Positions 13,973-58,400 of a DNA stretch of 64,000 nucleotides are shown piece by piece. The stretch lies in NCBI GenBank assembly GCA_964199315.1, contig OZ116706.1:30752001-30816000 (forward strand). The letters run 5' to 3'. The DNA is from Orbicella franksi. Taxonomy: Eukaryota. A program made the position numbers and the translations under genes. The notes beneath the pieces are model-generated. The model worked only from the letters and a program-made list of their open reading frames with translations, did not search any database and was not told the origin of the DNA. Each line of letters begins with the position of its first letter. Positions within the stretch are counted from its first letter, which is position 1.

Positions 13973-14744
13973 TTACGTTCAGTTTTGATGAATGCTATTT
14001 CAAACAATAATTAAATGCATTTACAATATTAGACGGCTTCATAATAGACTATTCACAGCCCTCTATTTTCTCATATTATTCGATCATAGAACGCGCGGAC
14101 AGAATCTCGAGAGAAATGGACCCCAGCGCAAAACGGAAGACTTGAATGGGTAGGGACGGGGTGGGGACCGAGATAAATAAAGTGGCCGTAGACATCTTTG
14201 GAAAAAAGTGGATTGAACACGTAGACCTTAATGAGCTCTAAAAATCTGCAAAAGCACTGTCTGACGGCTCCACTCTAATAGTAATGATAACACAACATAA
14301 AGTGCCCCTCATAAACACATGTGAAGCAAAGAAAGGTCGAGAGATCGATGTGTTCGCCGTTTTGTGAAAGATCTTTCAACGTTTCATGAACACAAAATTC
14401 GAACGCTCCCTCGGACTCTGCCATAGGTATTTTGATCTTGTCGTGTTCTGGATGTTAGATTATGCATGAATGTCAAATTTTTGATGTCACGTTTTGATTG
14501 ACAGGCTAGTAACCAATCAAATTGCACTATTTCTCCCTGTTCGTAGGCGAACGGACTTCGGTAAAATGTTTGGGATTTACTGCAAGCGATTCCTTTTCTC
14601 TCCCACCCCCTCCCAATTCTCGCTCACCCCCTCCCCACTTCTCCCCAATTTTTTGCTCACTCCAGGCGCGCTCCTTCGTTCGCTCGCTTGCTCGACCTCT
14701 CCGCCTGGAAAAGGAAAGGAAACGACTGCTAGGCAGGCTATTCT

Positions 14745-40400: not shown

Positions 40401-43400
40401 CTTGTAAACAGGAATACTCCGCTATTTGGCCTCCTCATTTATGAAGAGAAGTCACGGTCATTTTAGGGAGGATAAGACTAGCAGCTTACCTCCGCTGTGG
40501 TGAATTGCCCTGGCAGTGTGCCATGTCCAACAATATCTTTAAGCTTTATTCTTCCATTGTGGAGACGCAAATGAGAAAGGAAACCAGGCTGCGGTTTCAC
40601 TTTGCCGTCGGTCTGAAATGGAAGTGAAATTGTATTATATTTTCACTGAGAATGAACAGAATTAGAAACATGGTATCTGTCAACAACTCTCTACAGATGG
40701 CAGAACTTGTACGATTCAGTGGAAGTCAGAGGTTTCCTTTTGCTATTTACGTCTGAAATAAGGAAGTGTGATACTTTATCTATCCATTATTATTTGGATA
40801 AAACGAAAATCAACAAGCTAACCTGAGAAACAGTTCCATGATGACCGTTCTTCTCATCCATTGTGCTGTTAGACGCTGATATTCTGGGTTTCTTTGAAGA
40901 CGGTTCCACGACATCTGAACCTTGAGCCTCCGCGGAACCACTGACCGGTATACTAGAGCTACTACAACGCGCAAGAGGCGAAACCTCCCTACTGGCTTCC
41001 TGCTTTCTGTAGGGCGTGATAAACTGCGGCCGAGGACCAGACACCCTTCGGTTTGCGTTGGAATTCAAAGGGGTACTAGTCTTTGGTGTGGGGGCAGCTT
41101 TGGACTTGAAGCAGCCTGGCGTCATAGCTCGAAGTGACCTTCTGACAACGCAAAAGTTTATTTGTTTATTCAGCAAAACTATTATAAAACTAAATAAGCA
41201 AAACATTCTTTTAAGTTAAGGTGATTCCTTAGTATTGCATCGCGCATCCCTACTGTGCACGATTTTCGCGTCATTAGCGGGCGCACATGAGCGCTTGCGC
41301 GTACAAAACGTTAGAGATTTCCCTCAAACTAAGCTCGATAGCGAAATAAATGCTCTTTTTCTCTTAAAAGAGCACGGTGACCCCTACTTTTTATTTCATA
41401 ATTTCAATGAGAACAATATCCTCAATAAGTGAGAAAAAAATAGCAGAAATCTATGGCTACCTTTTAGGCAAATGAAAGAAATATTACAGAGGGAGACCTA
41501 ACGGGCCCAACAGCGCATGTCCAAATTATGCAGGGTATCTGAAGACATTTTTTTCTGGGACGTAGATGAATAAACAATCAAAGGAAGTCGAACTCTGTGT
41601 GGTATAACCCGCTACATTAAAAAATAATCGAGCTTATTTGTTGCGCGCGGAGATTACCAAAAGACATCTAAATAACCGTATTTGTCAGCATTGTGGCGTG
41701 AAAACAAGCACGATGACCACCTCTTTTCACTACGTTTTTAATATCTCCTTATCCTGTAACAACAGCATACCAAGTTTCAACGGAAATCTATAGCGGGGTC
41801 TTTTACTAGGGAATCACCTCAAGCGTCTTCTGGGGTCAACTAGCTCAGCAGACCAGTCTTGATCCTGGTTCTCATCTTTTGAATCGAATAGGAGAGCTAC
41901 TTTCCCAGATGGGCTGCCAGTCAAACAAAAGTGCGACTTACAAGTAGAGGCTTATTCACCTGGATCGAGAGGCGCTCTGTGAGAGCAAAGTATGAAGCAC
42001 AAAAACGCGGCAAAATGATGCAAATGGATCTTTTGATTACATCAACGGACACTGTTTTTAACTTCCCCAAAGACGCAAGCTTTCAAAAAAACGAGTAAAA
42101 CCCTTGTAATACAGACAGAATTAAATGGTGGTACCTTGGTGAATACGAGCTCTCCACAGCCGTCAGGCGTGCCCGGAGAGGAGCATGGAACCGTGCTCGC
42201 CGATCATGCAACACACCTAATAAGGAAAAGAAACCAGAAATGAGAAAACGTCACAAAGACACAAGACAAGAGAAAGCTGTATCAGACAGATATATCTGAC
42301 ACTCACCAAAATAGCGAGACCATTTTTGGAGAGTAACACCGAGAAACTTAAGTACAGAACCTCTCACGAGATTAATAGTGCTTTTCAACACCCCGAGTTG
42401 GACGATTTTAAACATTTCAAGGACAATTTTAGTGAGAAAGGCCAACATAATAAATGCTGAGGAAAGTGATTTCAAACGTGTTGATAATAAACGAAATGTA
42501 AATTATGAGGCTTACCCGGGAATCTATATGTACATGTATAGTGAGATACAACTGATGTAGATGAAGTTTACCTGATGGAGTGGTTGTACAAGGCTTCATC
42601 CCATCACGTGTCTCTCTGTGACTTGAGTTGAACATGTCTTCACTACATCGCAACTAAAAGAATTGAAAGAATAATGACACAAAAGCATCAAATTTCATAT
42701 CAGATCGATATGACAAACACGAACTAGTCTAGGATAAGTTAATATTAGGGAGTACATTATATTTACAGTTACTAAATAGGCTACTTACTGGTGTCGAGCA
42801 ACGTCTTGGAAAGTCATGGTCAGAAGCCCGTGCAGGCCCTTTTGATTCGTGAAAAAAAAGAAGACAGTTACCAAATCTGCACTAAATACATGTACTAAGG
42901 TAGGGGCTGCTAAGATGCACCATTCATGAAGTACACTATAGGATCGTTAATTTTTATCAGATAGTTACCTTTCTCCCTTCCTGTTATAAATGAACCTTCT
43001 GGCCTGTTGAAGGAGCTGCATCCAACAGCAATCCCATCGTGCAAGTTACCTGAGACATCTGAGGTGTCCATAACTGATTCATAAGCCAGGAGTGCTTCAG
43101 AACTCTCTAGAACCTCGCGGGATACCGCTTCATCGTGTTCAACAGAGCAGCTTCTACCTGGTGTGGACATAGTCCTACCATGCACCTCTGTAGCAACCAC
43201 ATGTTCACGTACAGAAGCTTCTGCATCTTTTGTTTTGGAGTCGATAAATGCACTGTCCGCCTCCTGTAAAAATGCTTTAGCTTTAGAGAGTGCCTGTTCT
43301 GATACCGAAACTCTTTGACCTCCAGCGGTGAAAAAACCGCCAAACGTCCCGCCGTAATTTCCAGTCTCTTGTTCAATGATGCTCAATTCTTCCCTTGCCT

Positions 43401-46400
43401 TTCTTGACGCATCCAGAGATGTAGCTACAGTCTCCGTGTTAGTTGCCCGCAGTTCCCTGTCAATGTCAGCCATTTTCTTTTTCGCTTTTGCGAGCGCTGA
43501 TTCCGAAATTTCCACCATTTTACCACCTGCTGTTTGAAAACCAGAAAATTCTGAAAAACTGGTTGAACTTGGTTTGGTTTTAGAAAAACCTGTGGCAGAT
43601 GCGCTGCTGTGTTTGTTTTCCTGGAGGGATCTGTCAATCTCTTGCATAATGGCAGCTCCTCTTTCCATTGATTCTTTAGACAGTTCAACGCTCTGTCCAC
43701 TTGCTGTTTGGAAACCAGAAAAACTAGTTAAAGATACACCGTTGTCCCATTTATCCTGAAGGGATCTGTCAATCTGTTGCATTATTGTCGCTCCTTTTTC
43801 CATTAATTCCTTAGACAGTGCAACGCTTTGTCCACTAGCTGTTTGGAAACCAGTAAAACTAGTTGCAGACACACTGTTGTCCCATTTATCCTGAAGGGAT
43901 CTGTCAATCTGCTGCATTATGGCAGCTCCTTTTTTCATTGATTCTTTCGACACTTTCACGCTCTGTCCACTAGCAGTTTGGAAACCAGTAAAACTAGTCG
44001 CACTACGTGGGTGCTCTACACTGTTTTCCTGGACGGATCTGTCAATCTGCTGCGTTATGGCAGCTCCTTTCATCATTGATTCTTTAGACAGTTTCACGCT
44101 CTGTCCACTAGCGGTTTGGAAGCCAGAAAAACTACTTGTACTACGTGTGTGTTCTGCACTATTTTCCTGGAGGGATCTGTCAATCTGTTGCATTATGGCA
44201 GCTCCTTTTATCATTGATTCTTTCGACAATTTTACGCTCTGTCCACTAGCAGTCTGAAAACCAGAAAAACTAGTTGCATTATGTGAGTGCTCTGCACTGT
44301 TTTCCTGAAGAGATCTGTCAATCTGTTGCATTATCGCAGCTCCTTTTTCCAAAGATTCTCTGCACAGTTTAACGTTCTGTCCACCAGCAGTTTGGAAACC
44401 AGAAAAAACAGATGCGCTGGGTGAGTTAGATATGCTGGTGCCCTTGTTCTGTTCCAGGGATTTGTCAATCATTTGCATCATGGCCGCCCCTTTTTCTAAT
44501 ACTTCTTTGGACGGGGCTGCGCTTTTACCTGCGGCAGTTTGAAAACCAGAAAAACTTATCAGGTTGGTCGTGTTTGTTCCAGGTTTGTCCTCGCTTGGCA
44601 TTACCTGCGCTTCTGTCGGTAAAGAGTCCTCGGCATCTTTGGAAACACAGTGGTGCTTTTCATTGGCCAAGTGGCAATCAATAGTTTCTTGCAGCCCTTC
44701 TGAGGGATCCGCCGTGATTCGTCTCATTATGTCGCTGCCTCGTCTCAAGGCTTCCTCGGATAAAGTTACCTTCTTTCCCCCGGCTGTCTGAAAACCAGAA
44801 AACGTGGCAAAACTAGCTTCAGAAAGCTCTCCACTTTCACTATTTGCGGTTTTAAACCAACATGAACTTGCGGAATGAGTCCATGACTTGTTCTCGTCTT
44901 CAGAAACAAAATCGTGATCAATGTTATTCACTTTACCTTCCAAAGTGTTCAAAACGTCGTTACTCTCGTCGATCATTTTATCTCCCGTCTGTCTCCTGGA
45001 GTCTTTTGTAATGCGCAACGAACGCGGTGAAACGTCAACATCTCCAGCTGGAACTGCGTGGAAACTGTTACGACTTTCCACATTCTTGTGTCGTGGCTTA
45101 TAAGCTCCCTCGAGGGCCAACTCCCGGTCGATTTTATTCCAAGTACTTTTTGCCTTGCTCAGAGCTGCCTCCGATACAGGGACGGGATTGCCACTTGCAG
45201 TCTTAAACAATACACAAGGTTTTTCTGGATTTGGAGTTGTACTTCTACAATATTCGGTCGTAATGTTCTCCTGGTATTGTGAGGATCTTTCGGGATCTGA
45301 TCGCCCGCGCGTCAGGTCAGAGAACTCTTCTGTGTTTGTGAGAATTCCTTCATGATGTTCCTCGATTCCTTCGCTTTCCTCGCAAATGGTGGCCAGTGAA
45401 TCTCGCCTTTGTCGTTTACAGTCATTCAACAAATCCTCAAGCAAAGAGTCATTTACGATTTCACTCTGTTTACATTTCAACTCATTCACTGATTGCTCAG
45501 CGTTTTGTAAAGCCATCTCCTCAATTTCCTCTTTTATTGCCGAAGTATTTTTCCCAGATGCATCCATATTTAGCTCGTCTGGCTGTGGCATATCTTTCAG
45601 TTGTGATGCCCCGTAACGTGGTCCTTCAGAGTCCCCCTCTCTCAGCTCATTTCCTGAGGCTCTTTGCTTGTTACTAATGCTGTAAGATGGTTCTTTCTCT
45701 CTTGCAACCTTCACAATCTGGCCACTATCGCCAACATCCAACTCAGCGTCTATTTCGCTCAAAGTTTTTCTCGCTTGTTTCATTGCTGATTCAGATATGT
45801 GAACTTGTTTCCCACTTGCCGTAGAAAAACCACAAAATCCCGTCAACACAGATGACCGTTGTTTCTCAAAGCGGGATGTATTATCTGTTTTTGTATTAAA
45901 TTTGTGAGCCGCCCCTTGTTCCTTAACCTCATTAACGTTCCCTTCTATTTCGGGCGAATATCTTTTAATTACTGGGCCAAATATCGGCTGGACAGCTGTA
46001 GAAATTCCATCAAGGTTTTCTTGTGCCATTTCTGGTTGTGCTATTTCTGTTTTCACTCCTTTAGTTAAGTCAGCCCCTTCACGGAAAATATCTTCATCAA
46101 CCACCTCGTCCGCTGTTGGCCTTTGCTCCTGTGAAGTTAAGCTTACCGTAGGTAGATCCAACTCCTCCAACAAAGCGTGAGGACAATTGAGAGCTTTGTC
46201 CGATATCTCAATTTTCGTTCCTCCCGCACTGTGAAATCCCGTCTTCCATTCAGAACGCAAGGCCGGCGCGTCCTTTTGAAAGTTAACACAGGAAACTGGG
46301 CTTTCAATCACGTCGCTTTCCCCTTGGTGACTTCTGTTTTTCAAGGTTTTTTCATCCTTGTGCACTACAGCACTTTGTATCTTCATGTCCTCCGCTTTAC

Positions 46401-49400
46401 ACTTTATAGATGCATCGATTTCTTGTGTAATGTTGTCAGTTCTTTTCCGCAAATCTTCAATACTCCCCGAAGACAAGACTTGCTGCTGTACTGTCGATGT
46501 TGCGATATAACCATTCAAAGAGTTTAAAGATGGGGGAGAACAAATACATTCCACAGGAAACTGACTGAGTGCATCCATATCAAAAAGGACGTCGTCTTTT
46601 GGGATGTGGTTCACTGTGGACAACAACGTATTTACATCTCTCTTACTTTCACAGAACGTTCTCATCTCGTCCGACTTAAGCCTCTTGGACATTGGCAACT
46701 CACCCTCTCCACCCTTGGGACTACTCGTGTCAATCGTAGCGCAGTGGTCAATATTCCCTTTTCCTTCTTCAGCGGTAGATTTCTTTTCCTTGACAACTCG
46801 GGAAACGTCAGCAGTTGTAGTATTATTATTTATACGCTTGCCTGTATCTTGTTTTGACACTTGACTAGCAGTCGGATATGAAAATCGTTTCGTTCCAACT
46901 GATCGCCGTAATCCGGGAACTTTACAAACCGACCTCCTCCTAACGAGGTTGCCGTGATCATCCGCTGACCGAGTGGTGGACTCGGCAGAGTTTGAGCTTG
47001 TCTTTTTATTGGCTTCTTCAGAAAGGTTCGTTTTGTTTGGTGGGGTTCGAATGCCTTGTTGAAGGTCTTCAGTTGGTTGACTAGAGGTGTTTAGTATCAC
47101 CTGATCAACGCGCGATGACTGGGCATTCAAACTGACGGAAAGCGACGAACCTGCAAGAAAAACAAGGGTCGATAATTTTCTCGTACTTTTTGCTAGGTTA
47201 AAGCAGCTCAGTCACGGTATTTTGTGTCATTTTGGCCCAGCACAAAATAAGCTTCTGGGGTTCTTTTCAAAATTTCCGACGAGGACCCCCGTCCCTTTTA
47301 TATGGGAGTCACCCCCCCGGGGACGATAGCCTCTCCCTCCCCCCTCCAAAGGAACAAAATGCGTGACGACACATGAGTAGGAGGCTAGGGAGACGATGAC
47401 CCTTCCGCAGGACATGTTTTTATAAAAAAAAGCACCCACATTGACAGATTGCAATCCCGTCACATCTTGTAAACTGATATCTAAAATGATTTGTGAATGA
47501 AAATTTGCCTCTTTGCGAACAAGTCCTCTTGCTTGGCACATGTTACTAGCCTGCAAACTTTTGGTAAAACGTCAAGTTATAAACACCAACTTGGTTGGTG
47601 AGAACGTTATAGCTAACTTCACTTTTTTAATTCTACTTCCTATTCATTTTTGAGCTGGCAGGAGTATCAGCTTCGGCTATCTCATGGGATTCCCTGGTCA
47701 GCGTCTGTGAAACTCAACTGGGTTCAGTCGGACGCACGCACATGAAGGCAGTTTCTGGTCGCTTGGTGAACAACTACACGCTAAGCAATGCTCCAGTGTA
47801 TCGGGAAGGATATCCTTTGTACCGGTATTACATCGCCTTTCGAAAGGACAAAGCTGCGAGGATCTCCTATGAGGAAGAAAGACTACTGGATGAACGAAGA
47901 AACTTGTGTCTGGAAGACGCACCAGAGAAGAAAACGCTGCGTGCTTGTTTAGAATTCGCAAAACGACGTTTTCGGCGATTTTCCGAAGATTTCCGACCAC
48001 TTTCCGAAGATTTCCGAAGATACTTCAAAATTTGTCCGAAGGCCAGACGAACGTTTTCAAACATTTTACAAAGACTTCCGAAGATAACCGAAGATGTTGT
48101 GATAATACACCAACGAATTTAAATGCTGTTAAAGAGACAAAAATATTATCAAAAATGATATCACACATGTGGGATATCGCTTTTAACAATTTGCTACCAC
48201 TCGATCTACCTCTAGCTTTTATATAATAAAATCATAACATCGACGAACGCAGTTCACGTACACAGCGACGCGGTGTAAACTTCGTTTGAATGATTAGCTC
48301 TTGGAGTTTAGTTTCCGGGTTTAGAGGTTGATATGTTTGGAGAAGAACAAACAGATACTTAAACAACTTCAGTACAAAAGTTTATTATAGAAACCACAGA
48401 GGCACCCGTTTTCTTCTATACCTAAAACGCATGTTTAAGGTTTTCAATGACCATTTTTGACAAATATTAAACATGTTTCTGTTTGCTACTTAAACGCGGC
48501 CAATCAGGGTTTAATGGTAAAATTTCCTTTTCTTGTATTGGCTCCATCCGGTCTACTGCGTATTTAATATTCTAAACACGCCTGATCATAAAGTCGGGAG
48601 CCAGGCCAGATGGTTACTGAGGTTATGGTTTAAAACACAGCTCGTTTGTGCAAGGAACAGAACCACCAGGAGAAAGATGGGGCCTTTAAAGTCGTTCTTG
48701 ATTCTGTTTTTAGCAGTGCTGTCGTTAACGCTGTGTGTTGAAAGTCGCAGTTACAGTATTTTACCGGAAAAAGGTAAGACTTGAAAGGTTTTTAGCAGAT
48801 CTCACAAAACATCGCGTGACCAATGTCTGAGCAGAATTTTGAATTTGTTAACAAATGGTGGGCTTAGTTGAAGTTCCTAAGCATAAAGCGATTCCTTTTT
48901 AAAACACCTTCTCTGTAAAATTCTTATATTCGGATTCATATCGGCAATATTGAATGTTACAATAAATTTGGAAATTAAACAACCGAAAGCTATCGGTTTT
49001 ATGAAACTGCCGAGGAGACAATGATAGCCTGAATCGAACTCAGAAAATCTCAAAATGCATTTAATGCTTTAAACCTTCAAATTTTGAACTAGTGAAAGGG
49101 TAACTAGTGAAAACAGTACTAAGAAAATGAATTGTTCAAATTTTTAGGTGCCGAAAGTCGACTGTCTTAGAATATTCGACACGATAATGCTGCTTAATAT
49201 ACTAAACATAGACTATTTAAGATGCACCAACTGATTAAGCCACAATTACTGCAATTAACGTACACGCAACCAAGAACACTTTGTTAATTCGTCTGACTTA
49301 AAAAAAAAGTTAACCGGCAAGAAATTTATCAAAATACGTTAAGAAATATAAGAACGGGGTGAATAAAATTTCAATGGTTATTCTTGCGGTATCACTGAAA

Positions 49401-52400
49401 TACTAGTTGAAAGACACGCCTTTTGTTTGTGAACTTAAGTTTGCACTTTCGCGTCGTCTTCGAAGCCTTCAAAATTTGAATTTGAATGGTTTTCATTATC
49501 AGACTGGAACACTTTCTCATTGAGCGACATCTGCATGTGTTAAATTAAAATGATTTTCAAGGCCCGCTTATCACAAGTGAGGGGCCCTATGCACCTGTTT
49601 GTATTGTTGTCAGATAAACAAAGGACTGCTCTCCTTAAGTCTGGCAGGGTTTCTGAGAACACCTATTGACACATATCGTGAAAACATACTTCTCTTAGAA
49701 CAAAGAAATTATACAGGCGATGAAATCGCCTATTGGATATTTCCAATTCGACATAAATGTAATTCTAACAATTCTGGCGGAGTTCAGGACTATTTTAACA
49801 AAGAGAAATTTACTCTCGCACAGTAAAACAGTGTATTCTCCGATATATAATTAATGTTGTAGAACAAATTAAAGCCAAAGTAGAGGAAATTCCAACTGAA
49901 GCCGGTTTTCGAAATAGAAAAATACCAACTAGGCAACAACAAACCAAACAGGCATAAGGAAGGTTAATGTTTGGATAAAATAAGGCCCCGTTCACACGTA
50001 TCCGGATATTTTTGAATCCGCAACTTTTTCTTTCCGGATACGGCCTCCGTCCACACGCATCCGGCGAATTAGGCAGCGAATCCAGATATTTTTGAATCCG
50101 CTCTCCAGACTGGAAAAAAATAAATCCGCAACGAATCCGATAACGTGTGGACGGTGAATCCGAATAGTTTCAAATCCGATGACGTAGCAAAATCGCGTCC
50201 AGTCTCTTACCGAACAATAAACCAATATGGCGGCACAACGTGTAGGCCTAGTTTCTCTTGAGTGAATCCGGATGCCATCGGATGCGTGTGGACAGGCGAA
50301 TTCGATTTGAATACGCTACGTGTGGACGGGGAAATTTTTGAATCCGGAAAGAAAAAGTTGCGGATTCAAGAATATCCGGACACGTGTGGACAGGGCCTAA
50401 AATGCATATTCAGGCTAATGTATTCCAGATCCATTCGCAAAGTGGCACGTTTAAATAATTGCTCAGTGCCTTCTGTTTGCGCCAATGTATATATTTTTTA
50501 AACCCTAGCTCGCAAGAGGCATCGTGGTTTAAATTTTTGCGCGGAACAATTTTCGCATAAGAGTTCTCCGCAAAAAGAAAAGAAACAAACGTTCCAGCCA
50601 AATCTAAAGAAATTCAGTAAAATTTTCCTGTGCAACTAATTTGCTTTGACAACACTGGGGTGTAGAAGATACGTTCTGGTTAATTTGAATAAAAACAGTC
50701 TTTAGGTTTATACGTTACACTGCAGGTGTTTTAATTCGGAGACAATGGGAGTTGAAAACTGACACAATCACTGAATAAAACGTCTAAGCATTCCTGTCTC
50801 AATTTATATCATGCCTACGAAAAGAGTTAAAATGCTAGTGTTGCAGTAGGAATTGAACTTTCAGTTTCCCCTAAATGGAAATATGACAGAAGAAAAAAAG
50901 ACTCCAAGATTTACATGTGAAACATAATCGTGTCTATGACAAATTCTCGATTGGTTCTCCGCGCCTAATTCTGTTACCACTAATATTATTTAATCAATTG
51001 ATTTAAAAAACCACGCTAGTATCTCATAATGTTGCTTATGACTGGTTTTTACCAGCATGTTTGTATATATACAACAAAGGCAATGACACAAAGGAGATGA
51101 GAGCGGGCTACATAAATTTACTGATTTAATGAAAATAAAATGGTGTGTTTTATAAAGGTTACTCCTCAACCAGTAAGCAGTGAGCACCGTGCATCTGTTG
51201 TTCCTATAAGAACTGAACATTCAGTTTGCTTTATTTGTTTCTTTTTTATTCAACTAGACGATGACACTGAGGAGTTGGGAGTGGATTACCTCGAGTTACG
51301 TAGGTTAAAGAAATTGTAATTTTGTGTCCCTAATTAAGGAAAGTTGTTCATGATTGGTTTTATATGTTGATCTTTGGGTTTCTTCTCTTTTTAACAAAGG
51401 CGATGAAACAGGGGACTTGCGAGCAGATTACAATAATTTGCGTACGCTAGAGAGAATAATTATAGCTTTGTGTTAAGGAAAGTTGTTCATGATTGGTTTT
51501 ACATGTTGATCTTTGGGTTTCTCCTCTTTTTAACAAAGGCGATGATACAGAGGACTTGGGAGCAGATCACAATAATTTGCGTACGTTAAAGAGAATATAA
51601 CTTTGTGTTAAGGAAAATTGTTCAAGATTGGTTTTCTATGTTCATCTTTGGGTTTCTTCTCTTTTTAACAAAGGCGATGAAACAGAGGACTTGGGAGCGG
51701 ATTACAATAGTCTGCGTAAGTTAAAGAGAATATAAAAGAATTGGTTCATGCTTTTAGCGTACATCGAGTTATGGATGCACTTGGAAAGTTTGAAGAGCAC
51801 CCAGGAAGCTAGAGTTGCTCTCGGCTATCGCCTCGAGCAACTCTTACGCTTCTTTCGTGCTCTCCAAACGTCCCGCATGCATCCATAACTCGATATACGC
51901 ACGCTAAGCATGAACAAGGAAAATGGTTCATGATTGGTTTTATATGTTGATCTTTGGGTTTCTTCTCTTTTTAACAAAGGCGATGACGCAGAAGACTTGG
52001 GAGCGGATTACAATAATTTGCGTAAGTTCAAGAGAATATAGCTTTGTCTTAAGAAACGTAGCAAATGGCTAGTTTTGTGTATTACTAACATGTTTCTTCT
52101 TTTCACCACAAAGGCGATGACACAGAGGACTTAGGAGCAGACTTCATTAATTTAGGTTCGTCAAAGAGAATATGACTTAACTAATTTGACCTACTAAGTA
52201 ACTAAGTTGTACATGATTGGTTTTATATGTTGGTCACTGATTTCTTCTCTTTTTAACAAAGACGATTACACGGAGGACTTGGGAGCGGATTACTACAACT
52301 TGGGTAAGTTAAAGAGAATATAATCTTGTGTTAAGGAAAGATTTTCATGACTGGTTTTGTATATTGGTCAGTGTTCGTTATTGATGTTCTTCTTTTTTTC

Positions 52401-55400
52401 AACAAAGGCGATGACACAGAGAAAGTGGGAGCGGACTACATTAATTTACGTAAGTTAGAGAAATAATTTTCTGTTTCAGAAAGGTTGAACTAAGATGGTT
52501 ACGGTTGTTAACAGACAATTTGTAGCCATCATCACCTGCTGGATTTCGTCTTTAGATCTCATCCACATGAACAGAAAATTGGAAGAGAAACTTCGTTCTG
52601 GCTTGATAACGGCTTTAAGCTGTTTTCAACGTATTTCACAAAGTTTATCAGGGGTCTGAGGTCTTGTGGACACGAAATGAGCTTTGTTTTATCACTTGAA
52701 AATTTTCATGTAAACTGAATCAAAACTGAAACTGTAGGAGTTTCCCATATGTTCTCCCTAATTAACAAATGGTAAACGCCATAACGTGTACTATTGAGTT
52801 ATGGATGCACGCGGGAGGTTGCTAAGCACGAAAGAAGCGTAAGAGTCGCACGAGGCGATCGCCTCGTGCGACTCTAGCTTCTTGAGTGCTTAGCAAACCT
52901 CCCAAGTGCATCCATAACTCAATAGTACACGCTACGGCGTTTACCATTTGTTTTATAACATAACATTGAAACATTGGAACAACAGAAGTCCTTTTATTGA
53001 GCTACATCCCAAAAAATGTAGTCTTACATGACAAGAGAAAACAAGCGCGCGAAAATTCATTCATGAAAACCGACTGCACACCAGTAACTCGATAAAGTTT
53101 CATCTTCACACAACTGTGAAGACAGTTTCGCATTTCTGGGAGAAGGACGTCGGCCATTACTTTGGAAACAATGTCTGTCAAAAGATTTGCTTTGTAAACA
53201 TTAGCACACACGTCAGCAGCGTACACCCATGGGCAAATAGTAGACGCTAAATTAACCAATCAGAGCGCGCGCTTTGCTTTAGTTATGTTATAATTATTCT
53301 ATTTGTACACGTGACAGCCACGTGTGGCAAGTCGTCAGCAGCAGGAAGCCGCGTGATTGGTGGCACGGACGCTGCTCCAGGTGAATGGCCCTGGCAAGCG
53401 AAGCTTAGAACCAAAGACTCAGGATTCATCTGTGGCGGCTCGCTCATCACACCAACATGGGTAATGACTGCTGCTCACTGCGTCTCAAGTTCTGATGATC
53501 CCAGCGTGTACAGCGTGACGATGGGGGACCTCAACAGAGAGAAACCCGAGGGAACCGAGCAGGAGTTCAGCGTCAAAAGAGTGGTAGTACACCCTAAGTA
53601 CAATTCGCCGATTGCTATCAATAACGACATAGCTTTGCTGCAGTTGACACGTTCAGCAAGCAAGAATTCCTTTGTGAACACGGTGTGTTTGCCGGACGAG
53701 TCGGAGGTCGTGCCAGTTGGAACCAAATGTTACATTTCAGGTAAAAATGAACTTGTTATTGTCTCTGTCAATATACACTTGAGTAAAGAACTGCAGGCTG
53801 CACTTCACAAGCGAGCGTAGAACTGCCTCATTTTAACGACTAAGAATAAGAGAACTTGCAGAGACTGAGAGTTTCTTGTATTAAAAAAAATTGCAGCTAA
53901 ATAACTGAGAGAAAAATGCAGTGGAACAAAAATCCCTTATTCGATAGTTTTAAATATAACACTTTTAACTGACAGCTTATTCTTTTGAGAAACTTACTTA
54001 ACCCATTGTTTCATCGACGAAGTCTGTGTATCAGTTACGGTAAGCTCTCTAATAATTTTTAGTGATTATTGGTCAGATAGAATCTCATATAGACCAGTTG
54101 TCGAACAAAGAAGTCGTCGGACAAAATTCATTCGGTTCTTCTTCGATTTTGACAGTTGCACGGTAGGGAACCGGTTTGAAAAACGCTTAAACCTCCTTTA
54201 GATCCTGGAAGTTTCGAGCCGATATTTTTAACCATTAAATTGCTGTTAACTGAGAATTCGACGAAATGGCATAGAATTTATCAGGTTCACGAGCATTAGG
54301 TGGATGTCTGCGTTCTTCACTAAACGAGTTCCAGTCGAACAGTTGTAATGCGAACACAGTCAAAGTAGGACTGCTCGATCCGGAGTCGAGTGAACTAACC
54401 ATGAGGACACCGTGCCTCCACAACACAATCAAATAAAACGGAACTTATTCTGTGTGAATGTTGTTTTGTTATTACAGGTTGGGGACAGATGACTCATCCC
54501 GACGATGCAGCCATTAAACTCCAACAAGCTCCCATGCCGGTCGTGTCCAATCGTGTCTGCCAAGCCAAGCACATGAAATCACCTATCAGCAGTGCTGGGG
54601 AGACCGCCGTGACTTCAGCTATGCTGTGTGCAGGAGACGCCGGCAAAACCAAGATAAGCGGCTGCTTTGGTGACAGTGGAGGACCTTTTGTTTGCCGAAA
54701 CACAGCTGGCCAGTGGGTACAGCAGGGGATCGTGAGCTGGGGTGATACGGTCTGCTCTTCAAAGAGTCACTTCACTGTGTTTGCTCGAGTGAGTGTCTTT
54801 CGACAATGGATCGAGGATACAATTAGCGAGTAAATCGAAGGTGTTAAAAAATCGCTTGCAAAGAAACTAGCGATAAATTAAATTAAACAAAATCATGAAA
54901 ATACTTTTACTTAAACTAACAACAATAAAGCGATGAATCTGCCGATTTAGTGTTTGTGCTTTTTTGTTGTTGCTGTTGTTTTTCGTGTGAGTAATACAGA
55001 CCATTCAAGACGTCCATAAGTTTGATCGCTGTTCCAAGCAAGACTGGGCTAATAACCGAACAGAACACAATTTGTGGGAAATTAATTAGAGATGAAAGAT
55101 TATAGCCCGCTCGCTCGACAGGTTTACAGTTCAGATTGCTACACAACGAATTTTGTCAACGAATCACATTTGACAACCACAAAAACGGTTTACGCGCCTC
55201 CCAAACATTTAAGATCCCGGATTACATGAAGTCAAGTAATAGAACAAAGTCAACACAATTGACAAAAATCACTTCATCGGGTTTCAGCGGTTTTATTCTT
55301 TTTTTTGGGGGGGGGGGGGGTTATTTTTTTGGTTTAGTCAGCCCTGCTTGGTTGAAAAGAAACACCAGCATATTGCCGTGATTATGTAAAACACGCAGCC

Positions 55401-58400
55401 AATTAATCATCCTCACAACAACCGAAGAATAGCCACGCTCGCAGGATAGGTCATTCGCCCTTTTGCGTAAAACCCTCGTATGAACATGAGTTTTGAGCAA
55501 TACTCTTATTGTGAGAAATACACTGTACTCGTGCCCAAATAAAAACTTTTGTAACAGACTCCATGTTAAAGTTGAGTTGAAAGGCACATTGGACATGACC
55601 AATTGCTTTGATAGTAACTTACCACTGAAACTAACACACTAGAAGAAAGACAAAAATAAACGAGAAGCATTTTTCATTCTTAAGACTTCTTAAACACAAC
55701 CTACCTAGTCCAGAGGTTCGCGAATCTTTCTCAACTCCAGAACCCAGTTTGTCTGCCTCAAGCGCCATAGCCAGTTCAAAGGACCTCGAAGGAGAACCAA
55801 ACGTGACATCAGAAACTTCAAGTTTGCAATCCACTTCAGTGGCGTGACGAGTAATGTCACACGCCGCTCGTGCTTGTACTTTGTCACACAACAGGCTTGA
55901 CGAATTAGGAAGCGCACTTGTATCATGTGTAAGGCTCGTGTCACGATGTCTTGTCACGCACAGTTCATTTAGTCCTGTTATAAAACCGATTGAGTTGGTA
56001 GATGAAATTCTGGGCGTGGTTGCGATGTCACGATTCTCACTGAATACAGGTTTAGGAGTGGACTGGGCCAAAGCTTTGAATGGAGTCTTGGTGGTGGGTG
56101 AAAGAAAGGTGTTTGGACCTGGCGATTGAAACAGGTTTGACTTGGGAGATGATGGAGAGAACACCTTGGACTGGGGACGCCTTTCTACTGATGGTGAAAC
56201 GATCAAAGGCTCTTCATTTAACGTTTCTGAGAGACTTTTGACGTCACGTCTAGATTCATCATGATAAGAATACTCCACTAAGAATTCCTCCGCTATGCAA
56301 GAATTATCTGCCGTCTGTGCTGGGTCGCGTACAGCGTCCTCTTCCTCCAGTGGTTCTAAAGACAGGTCGTTTGTTTTAGCATCGTCCATGGATAGCTCTA
56401 CAGGGTCCATGGAATGATTGGCGGTCGAGCCAGAGAACAGGACTCGGGCAATACGCTGAAAAGATAATATACCCTGATTACCAGAAAGGCTTTGAGTAAC
56501 CAGAGTGCGTGTAAAAGCTTACAAAATAAGTCAGCCTCTGAGGTATAGCTCAACATTGTCACCGCATAAATTCAGCCAGCACAGACTGAGGGGCTTAGAA
56601 GAATGTGACTGCTTTCGGATAGAACATCACTCCACCGCATGAGACGTCTTTATGAATATCGTGAACATTCATCAGGCCTGTCTAATTCAATCAGAGACAC
56701 AAAACTATTGGGATCGACCGACTATTGACCGACTATCGACCGAGTGTTGACCGACTTTCGACTGACTGTCGACCGATATATGATCGGTCGATTATCGACC
56801 GACTCTCGACTGATATATCGACTGCCATATCGGTCGAGACTACCTACAGTAAACATGATCCAACTATTGCCTACTAAAATTATTGGTGCAGAGCCTGTCA
56901 TTTGTACCTTACGAAAAGTTTGCGATAATACAGGACATGAGTAAAAAAGAAATTATTTTAAAAAGAGATTACGAGATAACATTTAGCGCACCCTTGACGG
57001 AGGTTGGTCTTCTCCTTCTGTCGCGTTTTCATTCGTGTCTCCTGCATCTTCTTCTTCGCTATCACCTTCATCTGTAAAACACAAAATACAGTGAATTCGT
57101 AGGAAAAAAAACACGCGGTAGCGTGCTCATTCCAAAACCTATTCTGGAGCACAATCTGTTCCCCAGTCTTTACGACGTCGGTATTACTCGTAGACGCCGC
57201 GGAGCGGCGAAGGTCTGGAAACAAAGAAAGAGATGCTCATGGAAATAACACCCAAAACCCACTCAAAATGTATAAACTCTCCCACAATATGACGTATTTT
57301 ACAGTAGAATCCCACTTAAAACCAAATAATGAAAGAACCCGTAAGAGCCACGCTTTTAAGTTTGTAGTTCCTAGGGCAAAGAATGATATTTAAGTTTTCT
57401 GTCTTCCCACGAACAATCAATGAACGGAACTCTCTTCCTGAGCACATTGTGAATACAACGTTCGTGGATAGTTTTAAAGCAAGGCTAGTTAATAGTTATT
57501 AATGTTCCATGGTATTATTTTTAATGTTTTAGTTTTGATATCCCATTGTACTACTTTTACTCAGATTTTTACAGTTGGTGTGATATCTTACGATTTTCAC
57601 CGACTTAACTAGGTGTAGATGTAGATGTTAGGAGTAACAAGTCCACTACTCTATTGTCAGTGACCACCAGAACAAGGCAAGGCAATTATCCATTTTTTTT
57701 TTTTTTTTTTTAACAGAAACATTAATGACTGGTGGCCAATTCCAACATCAAACTCATCTTCTATTTATAGCTTACACTCTCAACCTGGTCCTACGCCAGG
57801 GACGCCTCTAGGCATTATTGTCTCATTAGGAGGTAGAACCTTTTAACTCAACAGAGCATTGTGGAAAAAGTTCTTTACAGATCTGCAATGATTTATGAAT
57901 AAAAATTAAAAACGAGACAAAACGCTTCAGGCGACGTTAGGAGAAAACATTTGTTCATTCGCACATTTCACCAGCGACAACTGTACCCAGTGAATAGAAA
58001 ACTATATTCAATCGATATTTGTTCTATAACACTGTCGTACACTATACATTAGACATTAGAGAAAAGGTCACAGAAACGCTTGGAAGCAAAGTAAAGACGG
58101 TTTAAATTAACTCTGACAGGGTATATGGGGTTTACAGCAAGGACACTCAAACCCTAACACTTAATTTCCACTCCCACCCCCTCCTTTTCTTGTTTTGCTT
58201 TGCTTTTGGTGACTATACGATGAGGACTCTCCATGAAATGTAAAGGATTAGGTTTTATTACATTGTAAAGATGCTAATCTCTTCCATGAAATGAAGAAGC
58301 CTCATTCTATAGTCACCGTAAAGAATATGTCGAGTATTCATGGTTCGAGTGCACTTAAAGTAACGCTTTAGGATGATCTCGATGTAAAATACCACAACAT

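Follow-up and report, generated by a model that had tools for sequence, protein, structure and literature searches.

Tandem duplication of phase 1-1 exons is known in extracellular proteins, and the tropoelastin and titin PEVK arrays are examples in which symmetric exons, copied together with their introns, yield repeat proteins of variable length. Acidic stretches near serine proteases or their activation sites, with tyrosine in an acidic context, are familiar from the DDDDK activation peptide of trypsinogen and from the acidic, tyrosine-sulfated tails of hirudin and heparin cofactor II. Chymotrypsinogen-type S1A zymogens, such as bovine chymotrypsinogen A and cnidarian CTRL-1, have the trypsin fold, the His57/Asp102/Ser195 triad, an arginine before V-I-G-G, a Ser189-type pocket, five disulfides and an N-terminal cysteine that aligns with Cys1. 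In schistosome micro-exon genes (MEGs), symmetric micro-exons that follow a signal exon yield secreted protein variants (10.1101/2023.06.21.545858). Here we describe a protease gene in 64,000 nucleotides (nt) of DNA from Orbicella franksi (assembly GCA_964199315.1, contig OZ116706.1, positions 30,752,001 to 30,816,000, forward strand; hereafter the window, whose own coordinates are used throughout). Its predicted product is a secreted chymotrypsin-like (S1A) zymogen of a stony coral that carries an acidic repeat encoded by eight micro-exons of 42 nt. Very probably, the N-terminal extension of this zymogen was lengthened by tandem duplication of a small module, and it would form a tethered polyanionic tail.

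The coral array belongs to this known class of phase 1-1 tandem exon duplications. It differs from the tropoelastin and titin PEVK arrays in that its repeat is 14 amino acids long, acidic, tyrosine-bearing and placed in the N-terminal extension of a protease, and in that its copy number changes between closely related corals. Like the schistosome MEGs, the coral gene has a signal-peptide exon followed by short symmetric exons (multiples of 3) whose loss or skipping keeps the frame. The two are not homologous, however, and the coral micro-exons make up 336 of 1212 nt (28%) of the coding sequence and sit on a conserved Trypsin domain; we did not find the micro-exon-dominated coding sequence without a conventional domain that is typical of MEGs. 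In addition, the coral units are all copies of one 42-nt exon, and their variation is apparently mainly genomic (between haplotypes), in contrast to the splicing variation of MEGs. The coral protease has the features of the chymotrypsinogen-type zymogens listed above, its disulfides being predicted, but adds a 112-residue acidic repeat N-terminal to Cys1, an extension that is missing from Nematostella CTRL-1 (P0168). Compared to the acidic stretches of trypsinogen, hirudin and heparin cofactor II, which it resembles without demonstrated homology, the coral stretch is repetitive, much longer and predicted to be tethered and not released.

Structure of the gene and its micro-exon array

The features of the gene in the window are as follows.

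48677-48773, + strand: exon 0, with start codon, signal peptide and short linker, ending in phase 1 (sequence reading, frame check, RNA joints to 51258 and 51539)
51080-51121, + strand: decayed ninth unit (Hamming scan; RNA depth 0 in bin 51040-51239 of run X23)
51258-51299, + strand: micro-exon E1, oldest of the 5' units and closest to Oculina unit 1 (scan, RNA, unit tree)
51400-51441, + strand: micro-exon E2, recent burst (scan; RNA back-joint from 51715 to 51400)
51539-51580, + strand: micro-exon E3, recent burst (scan; RNA joints exon 0-E3, 22 reads, and E3-E4, 29 reads)
51674-51715, + strand: micro-exon E4, recent burst (scan; E4-E5 joint, 91 reads)
51757-51900, no strand: palindromic insertion in the E4-E5 intron, resembling a miniature inverted-repeat transposable element (MITE) (inverted repeat; related copy at 52764-52952)
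51980-52021, + strand: micro-exon E5, recent burst (scan; E5-E6 joint, 81 reads)
52114-52155, + strand: micro-exon E6, with a counterpart at L005 2886 (scan, RNA, unit tree)
52262-52303, + strand: micro-exon E7, founder type of the E2-E5 burst (scan, RNA; clade support 0.99)
52408-52449, + strand: micro-exon E8, the ancestral unit beside the Cys1-equivalent, present in all orthologs (scan; E8-protease joint, 75 reads; pairs with L005 3421, support 0.98)
53318-53740, + strand: protease exon 1, with the Cys1-equivalent of PTCG, R|VIGG, His57, Asp102 and Cys122 (Pfam Trypsin E 1.7e-38; RNA joints)
54478-54833, + strand: protease exon 2, with the Ser189-type pocket, the GDSGGP motif of Ser195 and the stop codon (Pfam Trypsin E 2.1e-20; RNA joint 53740-54478)

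A mechanical scan of 51258-52449 found eight 42-nt exons, each flanked by an upstream AG and a downstream GT and free of stop codons in phase 1-1, just as a first-pass annotation of the window, made from the sequence alone, had described them; the unit peptides listed in that annotation were reproduced from the scanned exons. Most of the acceptors in the array read ...ttttaacaaag. The annotation had also called the units phase-compatible with the signal exon and the protease exon. All introns of the spliced gene are indeed in phase 1, and exon 0, the eight units and the two protease exons (53318-53740 and 54478-54833) splice to 1212 nt that form an open frame of 403 amino acids.

From E1 to E8, the intervening introns measure 100, 97, 93, 264, 92, 106 and 104 nt. 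The 264-nt intron between E4 and E5 is the sole outlier from the range of 92-106 nt, and the palindromic MITE-like insertion explains its length. Tandem Repeats Finder reported a 135-nt period over units 2-4. A Hamming scan revealed the ninth unit at 51080-51121, which has kept its acceptor and open frame and in which the donor GT has become TG. The insertion in the array belongs to a pair of related palindromic MITE-like elements (51757-51900 and 52764-52952, the latter in the intron before protease exon 1), with arms of 53-57 nt that are 81-93% complementary.

The micro-exons are spliced into polyA RNA

Reads of the polyA RNA sequencing run X23 were placed on 48640-54639, and about half of the placed reads were 95-99% alike. 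The RNA runs come from a closely related coral, ~1% diverged from the window, whose species label may differ from that of the window. Splicing of the micro-exons in polyA RNA follows the predicted structure exactly: the X23 joints from E4 through the protease exon are all GT..AG, on the + strand and at the predicted boundaries. At the 5' end of the array we counted 13 junction reads for exon 0-E1, 22 for exon 0-E3 and 29 for E3-E4, and further downstream 91 for E4-E5, 81 for E5-E6, 73 for E6-E7, 69 for E7-E8, 75 for E8-protease exon 1 and 44 for protease exon 1-2. Because the counts from E4 to the protease are nearly equal (69-91), units 4-8 are constitutive and present in essentially all transcripts.

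Logan contigs from two other RNA runs, X9 and X4, contain the same joints as X23. One X4 contig of 1419 nt comprises both protease exons and, ahead of the first of them, a further 168 nt, the equivalent of four units. At 83.6, the depth of this contig matches that given for the X4 contig at the joints E5-E6, E6-E7, E7-E8 and E8-protease. Direct splicing of 48773 to 53318 without micro-exon reads, the outcome that the first-pass annotation had named as speaking against a coding array, was not seen among the joints listed, and micro-exon reads were abundant. The decayed ninth unit lies in a 200-nt bin (51040-51239) with zero X23 RNA depth. Run X21 had almost no reads at the gene, indicating that its expression is sample-dependent. 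In 53040-53293 the RNA depth was above that on the exons, and this segment was considered as an additional exon; it was rejected because the reads split into many different sequences at 53293, as expected from a dispersed repeat that is transcribed at other loci.

Lineage-specific growth of the array

The numbers of units in the window and in related genes were as follows.

Window: 8 intact units (42 nt) and 1 decayed
L005 (closest relative, 80-88% nucleotide identity): 4 intact and 2 acceptor-less units
L001 (Oculina patagonica): 2 units, 42 nt, with the same acceptor/donor style
L002 (coral metagenome): 2 units, 42 and 45 nt
L006: 2 units
L008: 1 unit, 60 nt
Transcripts P0156, P0157 and P0162: 1 unit each
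Nematostella CTRL-1 (P0168): 0 units

Thus, the array has expanded in a lineage-specific way, and its copy number shifts fast between related corals, with clear differences between species (orthologs with 1, 2 and 4 units plus 2 decayed, compared to 8 plus 1), and the copy number probably varies between individuals as well. The 45-nt unit of L002 and the 60-nt unit of L008 contradict the statement that exon length never varies once other species are considered. The closest database protein was the hypothetical protein P0023 of Oculina patagonica, which is 83% identical in the protease part and has two units. When the repeat region of this ortholog was compared to 5.8 billion proteins it matched itself only, and no wider family of D-Y repeat tails was found. 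The gene model of P0023 (L001 10001-14306) has a truncated, frameshifted C-terminus, the last ~30 residues of which are not protease; the final protease exon is nevertheless present in L001 at 14245-14619.

In a tree of the units with their flanks, E8 grouped with the last L005 unit (3421; support 0.98), E6 with the L005 unit at 2886 and E1 with Oculina unit 1, and E2-E5 formed a burst of the window lineage within the E7-type clade (support 0.99). Over all unit pairs, the proportion of synonymous differences (pS) was 0.48 and that of nonsynonymous differences (pN) 0.15 (pN/pS 0.32). The exons of the older units have outlasted their introns: the identity of E1, E6 and E8 to other units is 0.69-0.83 in the exon and 0.42-0.62 in the upstream intron. 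These comparisons indicate purifying constraint on the units, and to this extent the selection invoked by the first-pass annotation is supported. The annotation had, however, derived selection from the invariant exon length, and this argument does not hold for units 2-5. In E2-E5 the introns are as similar (0.86-0.91) as the exons (0.86-0.90), indicating that the constant length results from recent duplication and not from selection. Dead units were found in two species, which shows that units decay by loss of a splice site and that this decay is frame-neutral.

The protease and the attachment of the tail

Both protease exons matched the Pfam family Trypsin (PF00089), exon 1 with 133.1 bits (E 1.7e-38) and exon 2 with 73.9 bits (E 2.1e-20), above the curated cut-off of 20.6. 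In the spliced translation, the catalytic triad is marked by the motifs TAAHC, DIAL and GDSGGP; the activation site is R|VIGG and the pocket is of the Ser189 type. The cysteines after the signal peptide, ten in number, fit the five disulfides of chymotrypsinogen. Among named proteins, those closest to the protease are of the chymotrypsin-like CTRL-1 and chymotrypsinogen types. Thus, the earlier proposal that the units are coding exons of a secreted S1A protease, with the frame kept, agrees with our results. A search among representative sequences with protease exon 1 was dominated by multi-domain proteases, and the close matches were a few short genomic read-through open reading frames and the Oculina model; a literature search on CTRL-1 in corals returned nothing useful. 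In L004 (13680-14886) and L008 (14516-15524), a second, more divergent trypsin-domain gene stands in tandem after the ortholog, and no such tandem paralogue was found in the window by tblastn.

The structure of the full-length single-unit ortholog P0157 was modelled with AlphaFold2 (mean predicted local distance difference test score, pLDDT, 81). Among solved structures, the best sequence match of P0157 was bovine chymotrypsinogen A (1.9e-45), to which the triad motifs and R|VIGG of P0157 align; the cysteine of its VCLP motif aligns with Cys122. In a structural alignment, residues 49-303 of the model match chymotrypsin residues 1-244 (Z ~35). Residue 49 is the cysteine of PTCG, which directly follows the last unit, and it lies opposite chymotrypsin residue 1. 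Because the array is N-terminal to this Cys1-equivalent, the tail is expected to remain disulfide-linked; judging from the model, it should stay tethered to the active enzyme (Cys1-Cys122) after cleavage at R|VIGG. The first-pass annotation had called the array a pro-domain. This term is imprecise: the position of the array relative to the Cys1-equivalent in the structural alignment argues against a released pro-region.

Composition of the tail and possible tyrosine sulfation

The 112 residues of the tail include 29 Asp, 11 Glu and 8 Tyr (Asp plus Glu, 36%), with a net charge of -33 and an isoelectric point (pI) of ~4. The element that is conserved across orthologs consists of acidic residues followed by x-I-N-L and then Cys. 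In the P0157 model, residues 41-50 (E-D-F-I-N-L-P-T-C-G) have a pLDDT of 85, compared to <60 for residues 21-40; in the model, the unit that adjoins the Cys thus seems to be docked by its hydrophobic end and disordered in its acidic part. A look-up of a two-unit segment in the ESM Atlas gave sub-threshold leads only (best 0.85, clip-domain and trypsin fragments), and these were set aside as uninformative.

Substrates of tyrosylprotein sulfotransferase (TPST) are secretory proteins with an acidic residue at position -1 of the tyrosine and several acidic residues but few basic ones within +/-5. The tail could accordingly be a tyrosine-sulfated module of the hirudin or heparin cofactor II kind, whose sulfotyrosines bind a cationic exosite or a partner, and we regard this as a tentative possibility. 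The protein has a signal peptide, 7 of the 8 repeat tyrosines have Asp at -1, and 8 of the 9 tyrosines of the N-terminal region have, within +/-5, 2-4 acidic residues and no more than 2 basic ones. On the other hand, one unit of the window carries His and one Phe at the tyrosine position, and in the single-unit orthologs F, T, A or L replaces the tyrosine. A literature search on TPST in cnidarians yielded no evidence of TPST activity in this coral. Hence the acidic context proposed earlier for sulfation fits in the window, but conservation of the tyrosine in the orthologs fails.

Differences among RNA runs in the 5' units

The three RNA runs differ in how exon 0 is joined to the array, and the joint used goes with a SNP in exon 0, at 48699. 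Run X9 has solely T at 48699 and solely the exon 0-E1 joint, X4 has solely C at 48699 and solely the exon 0-E3 joint, and X23 is mixed, with 72% C at 48699 and 63% exon 0-E3. In X23, 28 reads link the end of E4 (51715) back to the start of E2 (51400), and 21 reads join E1 to an E4-like unit that begins with GT, not GC. In the X9 contigs, three different joints leave E1 (E1-E3, E1-E4 and a variant of E1-E4). At 51412 in E2, the window has GGG (Gly), as opposed to GAG (Glu, the repeat consensus) in 45/45 X23 reads and in the X9 contig. Circular RNA was considered as the source of the back-joint and rejected, as 28 reads at an exon depth of ~100 were obtained from a polyA-selected library. At two apparently heterozygous sites in unit 5, 51988 and 52013, the sequence of E5 is shifted toward that of neighbouring units; these sites and the mismatch at 51412 may reflect extra unit copies or gene conversion.

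The first-pass annotation had proposed that combinatorial skipping of the micro-exons tunes the length and charge of the tail, so that one array would give many tail lengths. This would account for the presence of both exon 0-E1 and exon 0-E3 joints in X23 and for the three joints that leave E1 in X9, and symmetric exons can be omitted without a frameshift. Introns of ~95 nt, however, favour intron definition, under which skipping is uncommon. Moreover, units 4-8 are constitutive, and the choice of the first junction tracks the 48699 allele across X9, X4 and X23. Linear splicing of the unit order in the window could not connect the E4 end to the E2 start, and this back-joint together with the linkage to 48699 favours haplotype structure over free combinatorial splicing. 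Regulated skipping is therefore doubtful and the earlier proposal was not supported; units 1-4 are likely to vary in order and number from one haplotype or individual to another.

Proposed origin and role of the tail

We propose that the duplicated module is a self-contained segment of ~135-148 bp, consisting of a 42-nt phase 1-1 exon and ~95 nt of intron. Each unit comes as a symmetric exon with splice sites of its own, so that its gain, loss or inactivation would be frame-safe, resulting in birth-and-death evolution of the array. In the protein, only the hydrophobic end of the last unit (D-Y/F-I-N-L) would dock on the protease, beside the Cys1-equivalent; the other units would be disordered, and the whole tail would remain tethered by Cys1-Cys122 after R|VIGG cleavage. 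With low confidence, we suggest that the tail, a tethered polyanion whose length varies, influences how the protease is packaged, when it is activated or how it binds partners or substrates. Its tyrosines may be sulfated, and the enzyme may trim its own tail.

Several points weigh against this explanation. The three joints leaving E1 would need alternative splicing if X9 is one diploid colony, and minor isoforms, skipping included, may exist among nine weaker joints beyond those listed. With an RNA label that may differ and a divergence of ~1%, the isoforms of the window individual itself are inferred from a relative. Disorder of units 1-7 is extrapolated from the model of one single-unit ortholog, and the tyrosine is not conserved in the orthologs.

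In a more elaborate scheme, the array would be the cnidarian form of a micro-exon variation system on an enzyme: the haplotype, and perhaps splicing too, would determine the number of units and thereby tune a tethered polyanionic sulfotyrosine tail that serves as a pseudo-substrate, an inhibitor or a granule-packaging module, and colonies would differ heritably in activation timing or targeting. We consider this scheme improbable.

The tail might instead bind mineral or Ca2+ and direct the protease to the calcifying matrix as a skeletal organic matrix protein, which is quite improbable. Its content of 36% Asp plus Glu and its pI of ~4 would suit such a role, and skeletal proteomes of corals are known to include S1 proteases (PMC3748352). 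However, the skeletal S1 proteases reported from Acropora millepora have a CUB plus S1 architecture (PMC3748352), unlike the gene in the window, and membership of the skeletal matrix was set aside. In addition, the tail has no long poly-Asp runs, and the CTRL-1 and chymotrypsinogen types to which the protease is most closely related include chymotrypsinogens that are highly expressed in mesenterial filaments of another coral, Fimbriaphyllia ancora (PMC11269664). Our preferred reading, given with low confidence, is a zymogen of digestive or gland type whose polyanionic appendage is tethered and disordered.

That the tail is a precursor of released 14-residue acidic peptides, cleaved at the L-R boundaries or after Y, F or L, is unlikely and the least probable of these roles: a single Arg stands at 5 of the 7 unit boundaries and the Ser189 chymotrypsin-type pocket could cleave after Y, F or L, but two boundaries lack Arg, dibasic and other canonical processing sites are absent, some orthologs have one or two units only, fused to the docking segment, and the units drift (pN 0.15), unlike typical copies of a bioactive peptide.

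Implications and genomic surroundings

The micro-exon array is an RNA-verified case of a protein segment that grows and shrinks as copies of a tiny symmetric exon arise and die. Related corals form a series of 1, 2, 4 (plus 2 dead) and 8 (plus 1 dead) units, with haplotype differences probable. Gene predictors miss or truncate such arrays, as in the truncated Oculina model, and no database protein has the tail of the window; coral proteomes are probably under-annotated for micro-exon repeats. If the length of the tail affects the behaviour of the protease, the array would provide a simple heritable tuning knob.

Intron 1 of the gene contains a large foldback-type repeat (49840-50440) with inverted 'tccggat...gaatccgcaac' arms. 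This repeat has a very high word depth in the RNA contig runs X9 and X4 and is probably an abundant transposon family. Exons of a BRCA2-like gene flank the protease gene on the - strand, with a large BRC-repeat exon upstream at 42910-47130 and a 259-amino-acid exon downstream at 55631-56410. The latter is 55% identical to the exon beside the orthologous protease in L002. BRCA2 Pfam matches also surround the protease in the Oculina and L006 loci, and the nested arrangement looks conserved.

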